From the sequence record NC_061451.1: a stretch of 64,000 bases of DNA. One strand, given 5' to 3'. The notes below the pieces were generated by a model. It was given only the letters and a program-made list of their open reading frames with translations. It did no database searches and was not told where the DNA came from. A program made the position numbers and the translations under genes. Positions 1-8,983 of the stretch are shown here, piece by piece (within the stretch, counting starts at the first letter, position 1; each line of letters begins with the position of its first letter).

Positions 1-1482
1 GAATCGTTCGAAGGCTTCCAGAAGATTAACGGTGCGTGGAAAGTTGAAGACGCTCCTTATCCGATTGAAGTCAATGCTGGTGGCCATGTGTATATTGGCA
101 GTGCTGAGCATCGCCAGTTCACCTTCATGCATGACACAACCGCAGAAGGTATGCGTGTACTTCGTCCTGAGTGGAACACGCTTAGCCAACTGGCTCAGTA
201 CCCTTCTGCGGAAGGTCAGTACGCTGCGATTCGTCTTGCGTCCGTCGAAGAACTCAAGCAGAACACGCCTGATCAATTCGATGCCTCCAGCAAGAACATC
301 GAGCTGGTGCTTTCTAACTGCGGTCCTGAGAAGCGTGATATTAATATCCTCTCTCATGACGGCACAACGTACACAATGCCTGCTGTGCTGATCGACGCCG
401 TTGGTCCTTACGATCACGTTGAAGACTTCGCGCATTACATTCAGGACTTCCTGAACATCGGTATCTATGCGTATGCAGACAACTCCGGTATCTGGATTCC
501 TGGTCTGGTTGAAGCTGACCTGCACAACGCTGTTGCACGCGATGCAGACTCTGGTTATCAGGGCGTTGACTTCTACGCTACCTCGCGTCAGATCAGCTAT
601 CAGATGATGGCAGTTATCTCTGACGTGTTCCCAGAGCTGACCCGCTTCGTTCTGGACTTCAATGCCAAGTACGCCGCAGAACAGGAAGACGTAGTTTATC
701 TGGCGCCTGGCTTTGACATTGCCGAAGCTATGGACGGCATTCTGCACAAAGAGATCAGCGGCTACGACGACCAATACGATCTGCTGATGCAGCAACTGGC
801 ATACGTTGAAGACTGGTTCAGTGTTGATGACCGTCTGCTGCCTGTACCGTTTACGCTGCGTGCGCTTGACAAGCAAGTTGAGTTCTGGGATGTTAACGTC
901 GATGAAACTTCCGTCGTTATCACCAACAACTTCGTTAGTCATAACAGTGACGTCCGCGTTCGTCTGGCCTCTCGCGCTGTGCCTGAAGGCTGGCCGAAAC
1001 TCAAAGACGCGCCTGGCGTTGTCGGTGAGAAGTCTGTTTCTGTTGAAGGTGGTACTGACCGCTATCGCTTCATTGCAGCCAAGACCATCAAGAACAAGAT
1101 GGGCGGTATCCCTAACCAGTTGACGTGGTTACGCCTGTGGGAAGCTGACGGTAACGGTGAAGCGCGTGGCTTTGACCCCGTGTTCGATACATGGCACTAC
1201 GTCAAAACTCTCGGCCTCGTCAACGGTACGCGCAAGTCATTCAAACTGAAAGCACCGTGCCCTGTAGCATCCGAAGTTAAGATGGATTGGGATGACTTCC
1301 GTACGCTGATCAACGGTAACAAAGAACAGATTGTTAGCGTGTGCAAAAAGCTGAAAGTCAAACCTGTATCTCTGCGTCTGTGGGCGTTCAAGTTCGTGCA
1401 GTCCCAGAAAGGCAAAGATATGTTGAAAGCGTCGATCAGTAAGTCCGTTAAGAACGTTAACGACGACGAAGACGACGATTAA
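1..1482 (+). CDS. Hypothetical protein, 5'-truncated by window edge
   Basis: Frame +1 is open from base 1 (ESFEGFQKING...) into the listed 88..1482 ORF; strongly biased codons; acidic DDEDDD end. Confidence 0.8.
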   Translation, partial: ESFEGFQKINGAWKVEDAPYPIEVNAGGHVYIGSAEHRQFTFMHDTTAEGMRVLRPEWNTLSQLAQYPSAEGQYAAIRLASVEELKQNTPDQFDASSKNIELVLSNCGPEKRDINILSHDGTTYTMPAVLIDAVGPYDHVEDFAHYIQDFLNIGIYAYADNSGIWIPGLVEADLHNAVARDADSGYQGVDFYATSRQISYQMMAVISDVFPELTRFVLDFNAKYAAEQEDVVYLAPGFDIAEAMDGILHKEISGYDDQYDLLMQQLAYVEDWFSVDDRLLPVPFTLRALDKQVEFWDVNVDETSVVITNNFVSHNSDVRVRLASRAVPEGWPKLKDAPGVVGEKSVSVEGGTDRYRFIAAKTIKNKMGGIPNQLTWLRLWEADGNGEARGFDPVFDTWHYVKTLGLVNGTRKSFKLKAPCPVASEVKMDWDDFRTLINGNKEQIVSVCKKLKVKPVSLRLWAFKFVQSQKGKDMLKASISKSVKNVNDDEDDD

Positions 1483-1489
1483 TTAACTC

Positions 1490-1507
1490 GCGGTCCTTCG
1501 GGGCCGC
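1490..1507 (+). repeat. GC hairpin GCGGTCCTTCGGGGCCGC, identical to 50376-50393
   Basis: Exact 18-bp match read from sequence; cTTCGg loop; no U-tract follows. Confidence 0.75.
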
Positions 1508-1526
1508 CCTCTACCCGGAGAAAGAG

Positions 1527-1910
1527 ATGCGTACTCTGATTCATACCGCAGACGTAACCAATCTGTCTGTGCTGGAACTGGAAGAAGGCTCTGTAGCAAA
1601 GCCTGTTACTCCAAATCTGATTTCTGATCTCAAAGAGCTGCTGTCACGCGAAAACCTGAGCCAGAACATTCGCCACGTTGTGTTCATCTCTGCTGATCAG
1701 GTCGGCGTATTCACCGAAGCTGAGATGATCAACTACTTCGACCCAATCGAGCAGGTGTCTGAAATCAACGCAGGCAATATCGGTACTGTGCTGGCTATGC
1801 AGGTTATTCGTGTCGATGACAAGACTAATCTGATCGCAGTGGCTGGTGTCACTGATGTGGAAGAAGGCGTTACTATCAACGAGTTCAACGCATCGCCTGT
1901 AAATCTGTAA
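1527..1910 (+). CDS. Hypothetical protein
   Basis: 127 aa ORF with GGAG upstream; no family recognised. Confidence 0.8.
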   Translation: MRTLIHTADVTNLSVLELEEGSVAKPVTPNLISDLKELLSRENLSQNIRHVVFISADQVGVFTEAEMINYFDPIEQVSEINAGNIGTVLAMQVIRVDDKTNLIAVAGVTDVEEGVTINEFNASPVNL

Positions 1911-1980
1911 ATAAAACAAGTGAGGGCAATCGTGTCCTCACTTAACTCACTCTGATAGGGCATTGACCCAGGAGATAAAC

Positions 1981-2703
1981 ATGACAATCAAATTTGTCGA
2001 AGTACCGAACATTAGTATGTTCGAGGGTCTGGTGCATGGCGCCAACCGACACGCACAAAACGCCAACATCGGCGGCAAGGCTCGTTACGCATTCTACGTG
2101 GATGTGACAGAAGCTGCGGCAGAAGCTGCACTGTATTCAATGTTGCGCAAGAAGGCACACGCAGATGTTAGAGCTGTGGGCTACTCTGTTTCTCATACTG
2201 TTCGCGGTATGACTCAACCTAAAGAGATTCCTGTTTTCTTGTCGGACAATTTGTCTCACATATCATTGGATTCTTTGAAACAAAATTTATGTGAGTTGCT
2301 TCGTGCGCTGTGTCGTTCAGCCGCCAGCTCGGATAGCAATATCATTCTGTATTACCAAAAGGACATGGCTTTCATCAAAAGCAAAATGTTCGATTGGGTT
2401 CTTGAAAGCAAGTTAAGCAGACCTTCAAAAGTAGACTGCGAACTGTATGTTCGTTCCTCAAACATTGATCTTAACGTCCTTCTTAATATCGTTAGAGATC
2501 ACGATTATATCGGACACTTTGCATCTAGCATACCACAAGAGATTACAATAGGCTCTGATGCGAGTGCCATAGATGCCGTCAAGTTATGTGACACAGCCGA
2601 CGTACTGGCTGCTCAAGGCCGCAAAGTGCATCTGTGCAATGACATTTACCGCAAAGCGGTGTCTATCTCCTTTGCCGACGGTATTCCGCGTAATCAACTG
2701 TAA
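1981..2703 (+). CDS. Hypothetical protein
   Basis: ATG at 1981 follows GGAG; no family recognised. Confidence 0.75.
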   Translation: MTIKFVEVPNISMFEGLVHGANRHAQNANIGGKARYAFYVDVTEAAAEAALYSMLRKKAHADVRAVGYSVSHTVRGMTQPKEIPVFLSDNLSHISLDSLKQNLCELLRALCRSAASSDSNIILYYQKDMAFIKSKMFDWVLESKLSRPSKVDCELYVRSSNIDLNVLLNIVRDHDYIGHFASSIPQEITIGSDASAIDAVKLCDTADVLAAQGRKVHLCNDIYRKAVSISFADGIPRNQL

Positions 2704-2791
2704 ACCAAACACATTGCTGTGTGTAGTCTTTGGCCAAACTTAGGCTCGGGAGTCCAGGACGGGCTCCCATTTTTATTTCGGAGACAGAACA

Positions 2792-3856
2792 GTGACTGAC
2801 ATTAGAAGCAAAACAGCCTACGAATATCTGCACGACACCTATCTTGAAAACAATTTCTTTGTTGGCGTTCCTCGATCTAAACTCACAGCAAAGTTTCAAG
2901 AGTACCTGAAGACAACTAACGGTAGGCTGCATCGTCACGGTCTTCCTCTCGCTGACTTTATGACGTGGGCCAACATGCGCCCTGAGATTAAAAAGGGCGA
3001 ACAGCAATTTGATGCCGTCATGAGACTGCACAAACTTTCTTTTGATGCGGCCGCTGTGTACACACAATTCGTATGGTCGTTTACCAAAGGTGTGTTCAAG
3101 ATCGATCAAGAGATATGGAAACATCTTGCAGAGGGTGAGCCACCCAAGATACTTCCCTCAGATACGCTCAAGCGTTTGCCTAACTGGTCACAGTGGTTAG
3201 ATACGTCATTGAGAATGGTCCGTCACGATAGCGCCAGTGACACGCTGTTTGCTTTGACCACTGAAGGCTTCTGGTCAACGTATTTGTGCTATGATCATCA
3301 AAACAGAACGCACATGTTCCTCGTAGCGCCTACCGTTATGCAGATAGGCAAAGATAGTTTCATCGCAACCACTCTGGTTATGTTTGACATAACAAAAGAC
3401 CATGAGATGGAAGACAACATGGATTGGCAAATCACCGCCACATCAACTGACGGTCAAACTTCCGTACGCTTTACGAAAGAGCATGAAACGTACGGCAAGA
3501 TACTTGACGGTTTGGTTAGTGCTTGGATTGATTCTGCTGTCAATGCGTTGTTGTTCGTCGCTTCATCCGTTGATAACGTTTATAAAGGAGGTGTAAAGGG
3601 AATCGTCCCACGCAAACAAGGTAAGACGTTCAAAGTTCTACCAATACGTGACGTGCGTGTATGGCATGTAGGTTCAGAGTTGCTTAACGAGATACGCCAG
3701 TATGAATCTGATGTAGCCTCAGAGAGTTCTCAGAATCGCCGTGCTCACATTCGTCGTGGTCATTATCATAACTACTGGTATGGCCCGCGTGATGGTGAAC
3801 GTGTTCTAAAAGCCAAATGGCTTCCACCGTGTGTCGTTCGAGGCACCGCAGAGTAA
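2792..3856 (+). CDS. AcrVA2/FinQ-family protein
   Basis: C-terminal RAHIRRGHYHNYWYG...KWLP matches recalled AcrVA2 RPHIRRGHWHGYWQG...RWQP; also W..TKGVFKIDQEI, LKRLPNW, EGFW, VGSELLNEIRQY in the same order. Confidence 0.75.
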   Translation: MTDIRSKTAYEYLHDTYLENNFFVGVPRSKLTAKFQEYLKTTNGRLHRHGLPLADFMTWANMRPEIKKGEQQFDAVMRLHKLSFDAAAVYTQFVWSFTKGVFKIDQEIWKHLAEGEPPKILPSDTLKRLPNWSQWLDTSLRMVRHDSASDTLFALTTEGFWSTYLCYDHQNRTHMFLVAPTVMQIGKDSFIATTLVMFDITKDHEMEDNMDWQITATSTDGQTSVRFTKEHETYGKILDGLVSAWIDSAVNALLFVASSVDNVYKGGVKGIVPRKQGKTFKVLPIRDVRVWHVGSELLNEIRQYESDVASESSQNRRAHIRRGHYHNYWYGPRDGERVLKAKWLPPCVVRGTAE

Positions 3857-3905
3857 TCACAATCAACCTTATCTTCCACAAAGGCGTTTAGCCTAGGAGA
3901 ATCTT

Positions 3906-4664
3906 ATGTCCCGTGTACAAACGTTGTTCATCCCTGAAGTTGAACGTTTTGAAGCGTATGTTAAGTCGTTGCTGCACATGGCACGCACGCTAGATAACAG
4001 CGGTCGTCAATACAACCGCACGAAACATGTCGTCGTCGTTGGCTCAACAACTCGCATAGTCGAAGCCTACGTCAAAACAACAATCGGCTCTAACACAGTT
4101 CCAGATGGCGTTTTCTGCCTCGGACTGAACCAAGCGCCTGACCTCTATAAGAAGTATGACTTCGGCTCTGCTCATGTTGTACTGATGTTCGATCTGATGT
4201 ATACGTCGGAGAGCGCAATCAACTCACTCGCCCACAGACTGTTTGATATTATCCTGACGCTCAAGCAGCGACCAGAAGATAAAGAACTGAAAAACCTTCC
4301 GATACATATCGTCGGTCAGAACTGGAAGGTGTGGGATGCTATGATGGAGTCGGGTGCAGGCAATGCAGCAAACTACGAATGCTATTCTAAGGGATTGCAG
4401 TTTGCACCCAATCAAACTTTCGAAACAGCCTCATGCATCACGTTTGATCAGCTACTCACGCAGGACCCGAACACTTACGCCAAGCACGACATTTCGATTG
4501 GCCGAGAGTTCACCGTGATTGATCATGCTACGCTGATTCAAAAACTCCATAACATCAAATGGGTGTTGCAGTCAGGCCAGACACAACACAAACTCATCCT
4601 CGACCACGCGTTTCAGCGCATTTTGTTCGAGCAATATCTCTGCTATGAGTTTCAGGGTCTTTAA
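3906..4664 (+). CDS. Hypothetical protein
   Basis: 252 aa ORF, GGAG RBS; no family recognised. Confidence 0.8.
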   Translation: MSRVQTLFIPEVERFEAYVKSLLHMARTLDNSGRQYNRTKHVVVVGSTTRIVEAYVKTTIGSNTVPDGVFCLGLNQAPDLYKKYDFGSAHVVLMFDLMYTSESAINSLAHRLFDIILTLKQRPEDKELKNLPIHIVGQNWKVWDAMMESGAGNAANYECYSKGLQFAPNQTFETASCITFDQLLTQDPNTYAKHDISIGREFTVIDHATLIQKLHNIKWVLQSGQTQHKLILDHAFQRILFEQYLCYEFQGL

Positions 4665-5066: not shown

Positions 5067-5333
5067 ATGTCTGTTCAGATTCAACTGTCCGAGAAAAACC
5101 TCGACGATATTATGCAGCACTCCACCAGCCGCATCAGCCTGTCTGAGTTGAATGCGCGTCTGGCGCAAGATGAAATCATCATGCAGAACGTGCTGGTGGA
5201 ACGCCCTGTAGGCGCCGGTGTGCCTATCACTGTCGTGCGTGATATTGTTGATCGCTATCTGGAGCTGATTCGCAATCCAGGTCCGATTGACGGTCAATGG
5301 CAGCCGCAAGAATACGCTATCGTGCAATACTGA
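5067..5333 (+). CDS. Hypothetical protein
   Basis: ATG at 5067 after GGAGA, within listed 4818..5333 ORF. Confidence 0.7.
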   Translation: MSVQIQLSEKNLDDIMQHSTSRISLSELNARLAQDEIIMQNVLVERPVGAGVPITVVRDIVDRYLELIRNPGPIDGQWQPQEYAIVQY

Positions 5334-5407
5334 TCTCATGGGTGCCTTAGGGCGCCCATATTCGTTTATATGCTAATTTCTACCTACATTCAACTAGGAG
5401 AGACAGC

Positions 5408-6067
5408 ATGAAAATATTCGTTTCGCTGTCGGCCCCACAAAAACAAAAAGAACCGCCGATTGTAACTGAATCTGATCAAAAGAATCCTCGCGTAAACGAT
5501 AACAGCAAACTCGGTCAAGTGTTTGATGTGTTCGTGCTCCAGCAAATGTCCTATCTCGATATGAAAGAGATTCGTGGCTCTGCTGGTCCAAAATACGCGC
5601 AGGTTATTGCCGACTGGCTTAACAGCCAACGCAGTATCGACAATAAGTTCCGTGTGTCTAAGCGCAGTAAGATCTCTATTGCTGTCAAGAACACTCAACA
5701 GCTTGCCGCTCGCTATACGGACATTTACCTGTTGAGTCCTGAGAGCAATAAAGAGCGTTCGTGGTTGCTTAAAGGCGAAGGCCCACAAGGCAACAACAAG
5801 ACGATTGAGATTGGTCGTAATCTCTTATTAGACGTCCTATATGCTTCTGCTCTGACGTTGCTTGGTGCACACCTCGTAACAGAAGAATGGCCAGGCAACA
5901 GCACGTATGATCAAGTGTTGTTTGAAATGGACAAGCGAAGCAAACGTGGTAAAAGGATTGGTAAGCGCTACCCACGCATTGCCAAAGAAAATGAAAACAC
6001 ACTAATCACGATGATGCAGGACGGGTTGTCTATTGCAGAAATCACCGATTGGGTTCTGAAACAGTAA
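5408..6067 (+). CDS. Hypothetical protein
   Basis: 219 aa ORF, GGAG RBS. Confidence 0.75.
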   Translation: MKIFVSLSAPQKQKEPPIVTESDQKNPRVNDNSKLGQVFDVFVLQQMSYLDMKEIRGSAGPKYAQVIADWLNSQRSIDNKFRVSKRSKISIAVKNTQQLAARYTDIYLLSPESNKERSWLLKGEGPQGNNKTIEIGRNLLLDVLYASALTLLGAHLVTEEWPGNSTYDQVLFEMDKRSKRGKRIGKRYPRIAKENENTLITMMQDGLSIAEITDWVLKQ

Positions 6068-6076
6068 GAGGAATCT

Positions 6077-6889
6077 ATGTCACTCGTAAAACTTCAAGGC
6101 GTCCCGTCCTTGTCCGCGCCTACCAAGGCCCAGAAAGATGCAGCTATCTATATGTTTGGCTCTAAAGGCCATTCTATCGTTGCTGTGTTGGATAAATTCA
6201 GTCGTGCCAAAGAAGTGCGTGCACCGCATCTCGATGGCCTGTTGAAGCTGATGAAGGAAGGCGAAGATGATGAGATCATCAAATTCGTTTCATCTGCTGC
6301 TGGTAAGAAAGCTCTGGCTAACGCGAAAGCATTCGCCGTTGCAAAGACACTGACCGCAAGCATCAAAGCGCTTAAACTGATTCGCGTTCCGATGAAGTGG
6401 ATCGACGGTCACTCGGATGTTGCTGCTGCACGCAACGAAGAAACCAAAGAGATTCGCGCACGCAAGACTGCTGGCAATCGTCCTGAAAAGCCTATCAAGC
6501 TCGATAACCCGCAAGCGCCTGCGCCTGTTACTCCTAAGGCCAAGCCTGTTCACATCCCGTCTGGCAAGTCTGCTGATACGCTGGTGGATGAGATGGGCGA
6601 TATTCCTGCGCGTAAGATCTCAGGCAAGAGTATGCAACAGCGTGAGGAATATTTGAATGCTCTGGGCTTCGTTATCCAGCGCAATATTCCGCGTGCAAAA
6701 GTCAACGTCTCTGCTGACAGCGTTATGGTAACTAAAGGCTCCAAGATTTATACCATTGCACTGACGCCACAAGCGTGGACGCTGCAAGAAGGTGTGACTA
6801 AGAAGCCTAAGCGCATCGGCACAACGTTCGACGTTGTTTCCATACTGTCTGCGATTGATTCTTCCTTCGCGCCTGTACTGATGAAGTAA
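6077..6889 (+). CDS. Lys/Ala/Pro-rich basic hypothetical protein
   Basis: 270 aa, GAGG RBS, central KPIK/APAPVTPKAKP linker. Confidence 0.8.
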   Translation: MSLVKLQGVPSLSAPTKAQKDAAIYMFGSKGHSIVAVLDKFSRAKEVRAPHLDGLLKLMKEGEDDEIIKFVSSAAGKKALANAKAFAVAKTLTASIKALKLIRVPMKWIDGHSDVAAARNEETKEIRARKTAGNRPEKPIKLDNPQAPAPVTPKAKPVHIPSGKSADTLVDEMGDIPARKISGKSMQQREEYLNALGFVIQRNIPRAKVNVSADSVMVTKGSKIYTIALTPQAWTLQEGVTKKPKRIGTTFDVVSILSAIDSSFAPVLMK

Positions 6890-6893
6890 CAAC

Positions 6894-6922
6894 AAAAGGG
6901 TGGCCTAAGGGTCGCCCTTTTT
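6894..6922 (+). terminator. Intrinsic terminator
   Basis: AAAAGGGTGGCC-TAA-GGGTCGCCCTTTTT stem with U-tract after stop codon. Confidence 0.8.
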
Positions 6923-7144
6923 CGATCTATTTGCGTGCCAATCGTAAATAACCTTTCCTCTGCGTTGCCTCTCCTACTCCTGCCTCGACGCCCACACGCT
7001 GCATACTCATTCCATTTGTCTCTACTAACTCTGGCTCTAACTCAAAACCTGCCTCAGTTTCCTGCTAACCTGATCGCTAATTCCTATCTGCAAGCCAAGT
7101 TCTTGCATACGCAAATTTGCTATTAGGTTAAGAGGAATATTCCC

Positions 7145-8983
7145 ATGATTGAAGTAAACTGTTTCGCAGATTTACGCACTACCGCTCCAGCAAAGGCTGG
7201 CGACATGGCGTTACTGAAACGTTACTATGACAAAGACAGTTCGTTTCGTGGGGGCGGCTACTTCATCGGCTTTCCGCAGACAAAAGATCTGCCCGCAGAT
7301 GATGGTGGTATCACGGCAGTAGATGCAAACAAAAGTTTCTTCTGGAAGCGTGTTGTGAATGACCCAGAAGAGATTAACCTGTTCCACTTCGGTGGTCGCT
7401 GCGACGGTAAGACAGATGACAGTGACGCGTTCCTGCGTAACTTCATGTGGACGTGTAAGTCTGCTGACGGTAACGACACTATAGGTGTGCGCTTCCCAAC
7501 AGGCACAACGTTGATCAACCCTATCGATCTTACGCACTTGGGTGAGATACCTGTGTTCGCTATCTATGGTGACACACGTTCTGATAAGGGCTGGCGTCCT
7601 CGTGTCAAGCTGATCAGTAACCAAGGCGAAGCTACTGTATTCAAGTTCAATGCACGCCGCACTATTGTTCGTGGTCTGAACTGGAATGGTCAGTGCTATC
7701 CTGTGAAGGACGGCAAGAAGGTAGACGTGTCCACGATCGTGGGTGCTGTCATGCCTGAGCAGCGTTCAAACAATCAGATCTTCCTTGAGAACATCTGTAC
7801 TATGGGTCAGTACATTGGCGTACAGTGCTTCCGTGCTGAGAGCAACGGCGGATCTGCATTGAAGTTCCAAGACACCATCGATACTTCTATCACAGAGATC
7901 TACGGCAGCAAGAGCTATGGTGCTGTGATTGAAGCCAAGTGGTCGAACACAGTGCAGGCCGGCTGGAACCACTCGACTGCTGTGCGCTTAGAGAACGGTA
8001 ACTTCCAGTACGGCTACGGCCCTGCTGTGTTAGACATGCCGCGTATGACTCAGGCGTTCATGAAGAACGTCTGGATTGAACACACGCGCTTCCCAGGTAA
8101 TATGAACGATGGTCAATGGGTGCTTGAAGGTAACTCGATTGAGAGTTCTGACAACCCACTCAATCTGGCCAACACTCGTTGCGTGATCAATGGCTACTAC
8201 TTCCAAGGCGTTGGTACAATGAACTTGGAACGTGCATCAAGCCCTGACAACTGGCTGAGTGGCTACGAGCGCGGCAGCATTCGTACTGAGACGTACGGTA
8301 TCATCATGACCGATTCCTGCTTCCGCGCAGGCTACTACACGGGTTATAAGATTACCAACAATACAGATCAGGACAAATGGTTCTATCTGGGCAGCTACTC
8401 ATTCCCGAAAGTGAATCAAGTGTGGCAGATTGAACTGCTGGGTACTGCACCAAACGTTGTACCGAACACGAAGCTGCAACAGCCTACGCAGATGGACGGC
8501 ATGGGTCGTCGTGTTATCACAATGCAACGCTGCATTTCACCGCAGAAGAAAGTGTATGCCGATATGCACATGGAAGGAACGGACGCAATCGCCGATGTTG
8601 TGTACCAGCGCCTGTGGGAAGACTACGGCAAGGTGTGGGTTAAGCTGAAAGCCAACAGTGGTGATACTATCTTCAACCTGACCACCACTGGTCCAACTCG
8701 TTTCGAAGCAGGTGTTTGTACGTTGTTCAGCGACGGTCCAATTGAATGCGTGGATCCCGTTCTGACCGAGATGACCACCAGTGTCGAAAAGAATCAGAAG
8801 GACTATGCGCGACCTCAGGCTCGTTTCAGTTTGCACAATGGCCTTGCAGGTGTAGGCGCAAACGAGCAGGGTCTCATCACTATTCAAACCAAAGACGCTA
8901 CAGCACCGAAAGATACCACTAAGCCTGCTGGCTATGTGAGTGTCAATATCAACGGTGTTGATCGTCTCTTGCCTTACTACTAA
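7145..8983 (+). CDS. amsF: AmsF/WceF-like exopolysaccharide-modifying protein (tailspike-like beta-helix), lacking N-terminal export signal and head-binding domain
   Basis: Motifs match recalled Erwinia AmsF/Pantoea WceF: GGGYF, FHFGGRCDGKTDDS, FP.GT, WNHSTAVRLEN, WIEH, QARFSLHNGLAGVGANEQG, KPAGYVSVNING...LPYY. Confidence 0.85.
   Translation: MIEVNCFADLRTTAPAKAGDMALLKRYYDKDSSFRGGGYFIGFPQTKDLPADDGGITAVDANKSFFWKRVVNDPEEINLFHFGGRCDGKTDDSDAFLRNFMWTCKSADGNDTIGVRFPTGTTLINPIDLTHLGEIPVFAIYGDTRSDKGWRPRVKLISNQGEATVFKFNARRTIVRGLNWNGQCYPVKDGKKVDVSTIVGAVMPEQRSNNQIFLENICTMGQYIGVQCFRAESNGGSALKFQDTIDTSITEIYGSKSYGAVIEAKWSNTVQAGWNHSTAVRLENGNFQYGYGPAVLDMPRMTQAFMKNVWIEHTRFPGNMNDGQWVLEGNSIESSDNPLNLANTRCVINGYYFQGVGTMNLERASSPDNWLSGYERGSIRTETYGIIMTDSCFRAGYYTGYKITNNTDQDKWFYLGSYSFPKVNQVWQIELLGTAPNVVPNTKLQQPTQMDGMGRRVITMQRCISPQKKVYADMHMEGTDAIADVVYQRLWEDYGKVWVKLKANSGDTIFNLTTTGPTRFEAGVCTLFSDGPIECVDPVLTEMTTSVEKNQKDYARPQARFSLHNGLAGVGANEQGLITIQTKDATAPKDTTKPAGYVSVNINGVDRLLPYY

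Follow-up and report, generated by a model that had tools for sequence, protein, structure and literature searches.

What does a relative of AcrVA2, the protein that has cas12a mRNA destroyed, do in a jumbo phage whose host is described without Cas12a? The question is raised by gp249 of Erwinia phage pEa_SNUABM_7, an intact gene of 354 aa plus stop at positions 2792..3856 (+ strand) of the window, i.e., the whole 64,000-nucleotide stretch of record NC_061451.1 that was analysed (positions refer to it unless another locus is named). An earlier note, made from the letters of this DNA, had seen here an AcrVA2/FinQ-family protein of an enterobacterial jumbo phage and had proposed that it may silence a host nascent protein other than Cas12a. 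The gene itself is real: the open reading frame (ORF) listing holds a single + strand ORF at this place, it is read without stops or frameshifts, and its bounds are exactly those of the annotated coding sequence (CDS) gp249 / YP_010303390.1, labelled 'hypothetical protein'. The start codon is GTG, with a ribosome-binding site GGAGA (2780..2784, + strand, read from the sequence) 7 nt before it, and is credible because the homologues begin at the aligned position. The phage assignment holds as well, the region matching Erwinia phages pEa_SNUABM_14 and pEa_SNUABM_7 at 100% identity over a length of 3 kb; both belong to Snuvirus (264-266 kb) and were isolated on Erwinia amylovora from Korean stream water. 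All five motifs that had been claimed were found in the translation in the order given: W95..TKGVFKIDQEI, LPNW (residues 129-132), GFW..Y (159-164), VG.EL.NE.R.Y (293-304) and RAHIRRGHYHNYWYG...KW.P (317-345).

The first step of the answer is nearly certain: gp249 belongs to the AcrVA2-like family (PF26125; AcrVA2, FinQ), as borne out by sequence, profile, predicted fold and conserved functional residues. When gp249 was compared with all Protein Data Bank (PDB) sequences by phmmer, the sole match was AcrVA2 (7ci1_A, E 2.2e-13), with gp249 residues 87-349 standing opposite 7ci1_A residues 72-316 and every motif facing its AcrVA2 counterpart; with a profile prepared from eight gp249 homologues, AcrVA2 was again the sole PDB match. 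By these scores, the likeness of gp249 to AcrVA2 is far beyond chance. FinQ was recovered by tblastn of gp249 against 72,556 plasmids, which gave 582 records, mostly from conjugative plasmids of Escherichia and Salmonella, the gene that was hit being annotated finQ (E 7e-9 to 3e-8, gp249 residues 95-349, 23% identity). The precomputed Pfam label PF26125.1, named 'AcrVA2-like' in contig annotations, is carried by a 99%-identical representative (same 90% cluster) and by all seven other homologues. Direct scans of the Pfam-A copy with gp249 gave no match, the copy presumably being without PF26125; scans against NCBIfam and PADLOC gave nothing meaningful, and the scan against PHROGs returned phrog_6160 only ('unknown function'). 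The search with the family profile in HMMER collected 2,438 sequence clusters at E ≤ 0.001, of which 725 reached E ≤ 1e-10; by these counts, the family is large. Two narrow peptide patterns were also scanned over genome contigs and hit one metagenome-assembled genome (MAG); they are too narrow to inform on distribution.

Structure prediction, which the earlier note had suggested as a check, led to the same family. The AlphaFold2 (AF2) model of gp249, built on the homologue alignment (predicted local distance difference test score (pLDDT) 82.3, predicted template modelling score (pTM) 0.82), was matched by Foldseek in the PDB to the AcrVA2 structures 7ci2_A (E 8.5e-12) and 7ci1_A (E 4.7e-10), both with probability 1.0, and the next match had an E-value of 0.12. 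The model has the three-domain AcrVA2 fold, with a helical N-terminal domain, a middle domain of beta-sheet and helix, and a four-strand C-terminal domain.

The residues on which the activity of AcrVA2 depends are conserved as well. AcrVA2 binds nascent Cas12a at a short, conserved N-terminal motif; the resulting mRNA loss needs translation, is indifferent to promoter and codons, and in the transcriptome concerns cas12a alone (Marino et al., bioRxiv 10.1101/2022.11.29.518452). In the same study, W79A and D89A weakened the activity, and H286A, R288A and H291A abolished the down-regulation of cas12a mRNA and left binding intact. A 2026 review (PMC13728456), in which the work of Marino et al. is cited as Nature 2026, adds that the C-terminal part of AcrVA2 associates with ribosomes and polysomes and that the cut is made by a cellular ribonuclease (RNase), not by AcrVA2. 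In the phmmer alignment (in which the chain index of 7ci1_A is the number in Marino et al. plus one), W79, D89, H286, R288 and H291 correspond to gp249 W95 (codon 3074-3076), D105 (3104-3106), H319 (3746-3748), R321 (3752-3754) and H324 (3761-3763; all + strand), and all five are kept. The same positions are conserved throughout the family: among 156 diverse representatives, W95 was kept in 96%, D105 in 69% as D plus 13% as E (82%), H319 in 99%, R321 in 100% and H324 in 99%, accompanied by H326 (96%), W329 (91%) and W343 (97%). The middle-domain residues P122, P130, G159 and G294 were kept in 94-100% (P130 in 100%, G294 in 97%).

Conservation is distributed unevenly along the protein. The N-terminal helical domain (residues 1-113; 2792..3130, + strand; AF2 helices 9-19, 28-41, 53-59, 72-98 and 106-113), which carries W95 and D105 near its end, could be aligned by sequence within the jumbo-phage clade only, the alignments of gp249 with distant family members mostly beginning at residue 56-86. 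The middle domain (residues 114-315; 3131..3736, + strand), to which the LPNW and GFW motifs belong, comprises in the AF2 model a large beta-sheet with helices at 235-263 (a long one) and 295-309; its core, residues 136-232 (3197..3487, + strand), is hypervariable, has the lowest conservation in the protein and is proposed as the specificity surface. The C-terminal four-strand module (residues 316-354; 3737..3853, + strand) contains H319, R321, H324, H326, W329 and W343 and is predicted, by analogy with AcrVA2, to be the conserved effector part. Expressed as mean pairwise identity of ten syntenic alleles, the values were 67% for residues 316-354, 46% for 86-135, 41% for 266-315, 30% for 233-265, 29% for 1-85 and 25% for 136-232. 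By this profile, the protein has a two-part architecture, with a conserved C-terminal module and a hypervariable central sheet. The residues E98, D129 and D195, reported to hold the co-crystallised Cas12a peptide in AcrVA2 (bioRxiv 10.1101/2022.11.29.518452), map to gp249 E116, D150 and about 220-221, the alignment being weak and the mapping approximate there; D150 and the position at 220-221 fall within the hypervariable stretch, and E116 lies outside it.

Taken together with the published work on AcrVA2, this layout is consistent with the following course of action. The conserved part, which would consist of the C-terminal module (316-354), W95, D105 and the two motifs LPNW and GFW, would associate with translating ribosomes, and a recruited host RNase would destroy the mRNA being read, as in AcrVA2. 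Recognition of one particular nascent peptide would fall to the variable middle beta-sheet (136-232) and to the N-terminal helices specific to the clade. This peptide would belong to a protein other than Cas12a that is made in the infected cell, the leading guess being a host defence protein or another host factor.

The same fold might instead serve a different biochemistry, in which gp249 would bind a finished protein stoichiometrically or act at the level of transcription, with no mRNA decay triggered by a nascent chain. AcrVA2 does bind mature Cas12a at a second site (the peptide of 7CI2), and FinQ has classically been described as causing Rho-independent termination at several tra sites (Ham and Skurray 1989, as cited in PMC8744291); furthermore, the decay mechanism was demonstrated in one of about 2,400 sequence clusters. 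The binding of mature Cas12a was, however, shown to be non-inhibitory (bioRxiv 10.1101/2022.11.29.518452), the residues conserved family-wide and in gp249 are those for mRNA down-regulation and not those for binding of the mature protein, and the lowered tra mRNA seen with FinQ would agree with co-translational decay, too. A departure of this kind is considered unlikely. A second biochemical candidate, that gp249 is itself an RNase of the HEPN type, was suggested by R321-x4-H326, which fits Rx4-6H, and was rejected: the motif lies in beta-strands (316-321 and 324-330) and HEPN is all-alpha. No HEPN structure or family was found among the gp249 family scans and Foldseek PDB matches.

As to the target, the host premise of the earlier note holds: E. 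amylovora is described with a type I-E CRISPR system plus a remnant I-F array, and type V or Cas12 is unmentioned in PMC9004355. A target other than Cas12a is likely because E. amylovora has type I-E and no reported Cas12a, and because the host is described with type I-E and remnant I-F only, the name 'anti-CRISPR' should not be transferred to gp249. That gp249 is a true anti-Cas12a protein, kept for natural hosts with type V-A CRISPR, is very improbable. Its homology to AcrVA2 and the incompletely known natural host range of these phages would allow for it; against this stand the CRISPR complement of the isolation host, the finding that most family members occur without Cas12a (bioRxiv 10.1101/2022.11.29.518452), and an identity to AcrVA2 of about 20%, which is lowest in the presumed recognition region. 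The reading that we favour, at somewhat better than even confidence and by analogy with AcrVA2, is that gp249 combines an AcrVA2-type mechanism with a host-encoded target other than Cas12a. The idea of a different nascent target was a reasonable one in the earlier note; it was not a new one, since Marino et al. had already stated that AcrVA2 orthologues on plasmids and megaphages, usually found without Cas12a, may have other targets (bioRxiv 10.1101/2022.11.29.518452).

Further evidence on the role of the gene comes from its locus. The gene order is sigma factor, single-stranded DNA-binding protein (SSB), UvsX-like recombinase, gp247, gp248, AcrVA2-like gene, gp250 and gp251, and this order is conserved in five genera: Snuvirus, Alexandravirus (members examined: Alexandra, the Dickeya phage AD1, and SNUABM_3, _16, _17 and _35), Sasquatchvirus (Y3), Yoloswagvirus and Rivsvirus (SNUABM_5). 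The AcrVA2-like gene was found at the same place in 10/10 loci across genera, on the same strand as the sigma-factor, SSB and UvsX genes, and in one copy per genome (tblastn). Between genera, and relative to the window phage, identity was 66-88% for SSB and 59-79% for UvsX, as opposed to 25-48% for the AcrVA2-like protein, 17-26% for gp248, 19-43% for gp247 and 37-41% for gp250; on these figures gp247-gp250 is a strongly divergent four-gene block after UvsX. The G+C content of the block (0.45-0.48) differs little from that of its flanks (0.50-0.53) and gives no sign of a foreign origin.

Within Snuvirus, the picture is one of constraint. In six genomes, 31-38 nucleotide differences in the AcrVA2-like gene led to 0-5 amino-acid differences, corresponding to a ratio of nonsynonymous to synonymous substitution rates (dN/dS) of 0.008-0.043; the neighbouring genes had higher values (gp248 0.06-0.18, gp250 0.07-0.16). 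By this measure, the gene is under very strong purifying selection within the genus. The low dN/dS shows that the gene is in use and excludes a decaying relic; its presence at the same place in all ten loci likewise speaks for use.

Such constraint would suit a housekeeping regulator of the infection cycle that turns off one phage gene or a central host gene at a set time, and so would the finding that all clade members examined carry the gene, in a constant position behind the genes for sigma factor, SSB and UvsX and in their orientation. The regulator of a conserved gene should itself be conserved, yet the presumed recognition part is the most variable stretch of the protein, and whole alleles have been replaced while neighbouring core genes stayed 87-97% identical. 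We regard this role as improbable, a little more so than a changed biochemistry.

The replacement of alleles was most evident within Alexandravirus, in which UvsX is 87-97% identical and the AcrVA2-like protein 28-75%. The allele of SNUABM_17 has its nearest counterparts in Y3 (55%) and in the window phage (45%), and on these identities the tree of the AcrVA2-like gene is discordant with the core genes. The alleles fall into at least three deep classes with mutual identities of 25-35%: the first comprises Snuvirus, Y3 and SNUABM_17, with Yoloswag and SNUABM_5 farther off; the second is represented by SNUABM_3; the third comprises Alexandra, AD1, SNUABM_35 and SNUABM_16. Sliding nucleotide identity was then used for a comparison of SNUABM_17 (5100-7100 of its locus, corresponding to window 1527-4664) with AD1. 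It amounted to about 90% in UvsX, about 40% in gp248, 74% in the spacer upstream of the AcrVA2-like gene, about 40% in most of that gene, 70% in its last 100 nt and 95-100% in gp250. By these profiles, alleles are replaced gene by gene in a cassette-like manner, with crossovers in the conserved spacer and the conserved 3' end. Seen together with the constraint within Snuvirus, the diversity of the gene stems from deep, exchanged alleles and not from ongoing rapid change, and in its pattern of variation the locus behaves like a conflict gene. As a separate observation, gp247, gp248, the AcrVA2-like gene and gp250 each have their own relatedness pattern among phages with core genes 87-97% identical; in the pair SNUABM_17/AD1, for example, identity reaches 99% in gp250 and 29% in the adjoining AcrVA2-like gene.

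Several points weigh against a host-encoded target addressed by an AcrVA2-type mechanism and have to be set beside the evidence for it. The mechanism has been demonstrated for one family member only. The global TM-score between the gp249 model and AcrVA2 in Foldseek is 0.42-0.52, with a root-mean-square deviation (rmsd) of >11 Å, so that the mutual arrangement of the domains in the model may differ from that in AcrVA2, the domains themselves being alike. Accessory anti-defence genes are not typically found throughout a clade and next to genes for replication and transcription, as this gene is. Finally, allele class does not follow the host: the allele of the Dickeya phage AD1 is 69-75% identical to alleles of Erwinia phages, and phages on the same host differ down to 25% identity in this protein. 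E. amylovora is near-clonal, and a mismatch between allele and host of the kind seen in these comparisons does not sit easily with an arms race over a single host target.

This last point bears most directly on the possibility that the same machinery is aimed at a rival mobile element, i.e., a co-infecting phage, a prophage or a plasmid, and serves exclusion or competition in the manner of FinQ. FinQ, a family member found here by name, acts on the tra genes of a co-resident plasmid and lowers their mRNA; deeply different alleles circulate and are exchanged among phages of one host species, which fits a conflict between phages better than one with a near-clonal host; and allele class does not track host genus. 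On the other side, no candidate target is known, long-term exclusion is less obviously needed by strictly lytic jumbo phages, and AcrVA2, the best-studied member, targets a host defence. A rival element as the target is given a low probability, and a host-encoded target other than Cas12a is retained as the preferred reading.

The exchange of alleles also allows a more far-reaching and rather speculative proposal, to which we give about the same low weight as to a rival-element target. The fixed slot behind UvsX in jumbo phages of Erwinia and Dickeya would serve as a site for swapping in cassettes, where one conserved, ribosome-coupled module for mRNA decay is re-aimed by exchange of its recognition domain; within one and the same host, each allele class would silence a nascent protein of its own, and gp248 and gp250 might be accessory parts. 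Should this be true, the set of phages would constitute a natural collection of gene silencers directed at nascent chains, each with its own specificity.

The neighbouring genes were analysed in the same way. The first gene of the fast-diverging block after UvsX is gp247 (127 aa; 1527..1910, + strand; 19-43% identity between genera), followed by the hypervariable gp248 (240 aa; 1981..2703, + strand; from the annotation; 17-26% identity between genera); gp250 (252 aa; 3906..4664, + strand; from the annotation) lies downstream of the AcrVA2-like gene, and its AF2 model has a pLDDT of 81.5. The proteins gp248 and gp250 are remote paralogues according to hhalign (probability 97.7%, E 1.5e-12, 224 columns), and cross-hits were obtained too. 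At least one of the two adjoins the AcrVA2-like gene in every clade member examined, and genes of this type were found neither beside the homologue in Klebsiella phage FBKp24 nor beside that in a proteobacterial MAG. For gp247, gp248 and gp250, used singly or as profiles, there was no match in Pfam, PHROG or PDB, and the gp250 model had no Foldseek PDB match below E 0.01. Specific partnership of gp248 or gp250 with the AcrVA2-like protein was rejected, their alleles not co-varying with it.

Two non-coding elements lie between gp248 and the AcrVA2-like gene. A 22-nt box (2708..2729, + strand) with a CACA-N4-TGTG inverted repeat was recognised in the alignment across three genera, in which it has one variable position only, though the flanking genes are 17-48% identical; between SNUABM_17 and AD1, the spacer with the box is where nucleotide identity rises to a peak of 74%, the flanks being at about 40%. 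The box had no match in Rfam. It occurs once in the 64-kb window, which rules it out as a general phage promoter motif. Downstream of it, a terminator scan detected a G+C-rich hairpin (2748-2768) followed by a T-run (2748..2778 in all, + strand), a terminator-like element immediately ahead of the ribosome-binding site; eight phages from three genera keep the hairpin at this place. Covariation in the hairpin is thin, 2/17 predicted pairs being changed on both sides. The box could serve as a regulatory site, belong to the upstream transcript as its 3' end, or mark the crossover point of cassette exchange. In Alexandra, the annotated CDS of gp249 (5935-6987 of its locus) begins with TTG 40 nt after the upstream gene and runs through both box and hairpin; judging from the alignment, the downstream ATG after AGGAGA looks like the real start.

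Three further observations concern the surroundings. The CDS of the UvsX-like recombinase in SNUABM_17 (1080-4655 of its locus) measures 3,576 bp, compared with about 2,500 bp in nine other phages, which suggests an inserted element, e.g., an intein or an extra domain. In the window, gp254 (6077-6889) adjoins an exopolysaccharide (EPS) depolymerase (7145-8983), and its conservation (54-82%) with much longer proteins of Alexandra (699 aa), AD1 (512 aa) and Yoloswag (485 aa) is confined to its first ~140-170 residues; in sequence, it follows the pattern of tail-fibre or adaptor proteins, whose anchoring end is conserved and whose distal ends are exchanged. The 64-kb window as a whole contains no tRNA or tmRNA genes, and its long ORFs lie nearly all on the + strand.

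To our knowledge, no bacterial protein other than AcrVA2 has so far been found to read a nascent chain and have the matching mRNA destroyed, and we know of no family target beyond Cas12a and, loosely, the F tra genes. Several deeply different and strongly constrained alleles at one locus, in phages of a well-studied host without Cas12a, are therefore convenient material for seeking a second target and the specificity determinant. In addition, the label 'hypothetical protein' of gp249 can be corrected in about 60 Erwinia phage genome records. Already in the literature are the family, the mechanism in one member, the occurrence on plasmids and in megaphages (mostly without Cas12a) and the suggestion of other targets, and Pfam already files the gp249 cluster as AcrVA2-like. 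Apparently new are the fixed slot in the Erwinia/Dickeya jumbo-phage clade, the cassette-like replacement combined with strong constraint within a genus, the upstream box and the flanking paralogues.

Among known systems, AcrVA2 of a Moraxella bovoculi prophage (PDB 7CI1/7CI2) has the family, the three-part layout and the mutation-tested residues in common with gp249. The two differ in length (323 aa in the crystallised chain, 354 aa in gp249) and are about 20% identical, and the N-terminal 85 residues and the central sheet cannot be aligned confidently; moreover, the phage that encodes gp249 is strictly lytic, has a 265-kb genome and infects a host with no reported Cas12a, and gp249 has no AcrVA1 neighbour. 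Homologues in Klebsiella phage FBKp24, Salmonella phage SA002, Dickeya phage JA13 and Erwinia phage RisingSun were found by tblastn (E 1e-9 to 1e-26) and by fold (TM 0.54-0.69), and unlike gp249 they lie in different genomic neighbourhoods. The RisingSun homologue (A0A223LH45 in BFVD; Foldseek E 6e-15, TM 0.54) is annotated 'putative mycothiosynthase', a name without support in the present data. Like gp249, the phage members of the huge-phage clusters that group with AcrVA2 (2019 preprint, bioRxiv 10.1101/572362) are uncharacterised, as is the AcrVA2-like ORF43 of Shewanella phage vB_SbaS_Y11 (PMC10846135), whose host genus carries type I-E, as does the host of gp249; the hosts of these phages lack Cas12a. 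The Erwinia/Dickeya locus, its fixed position, the allele replacement and the flanking paralogues are undescribed in the Shewanella, huge-phage and 'megaphage' reports. FinQ, the fertility inhibition protein of IncI1-type conjugative plasmids, shares the C-terminal HxR module with gp249 and differs from it in being plasmid-borne, on several hundred mostly conjugative plasmids, and in acting on F transfer genes; it provides the precedent for a family member with a target outside CRISPR.

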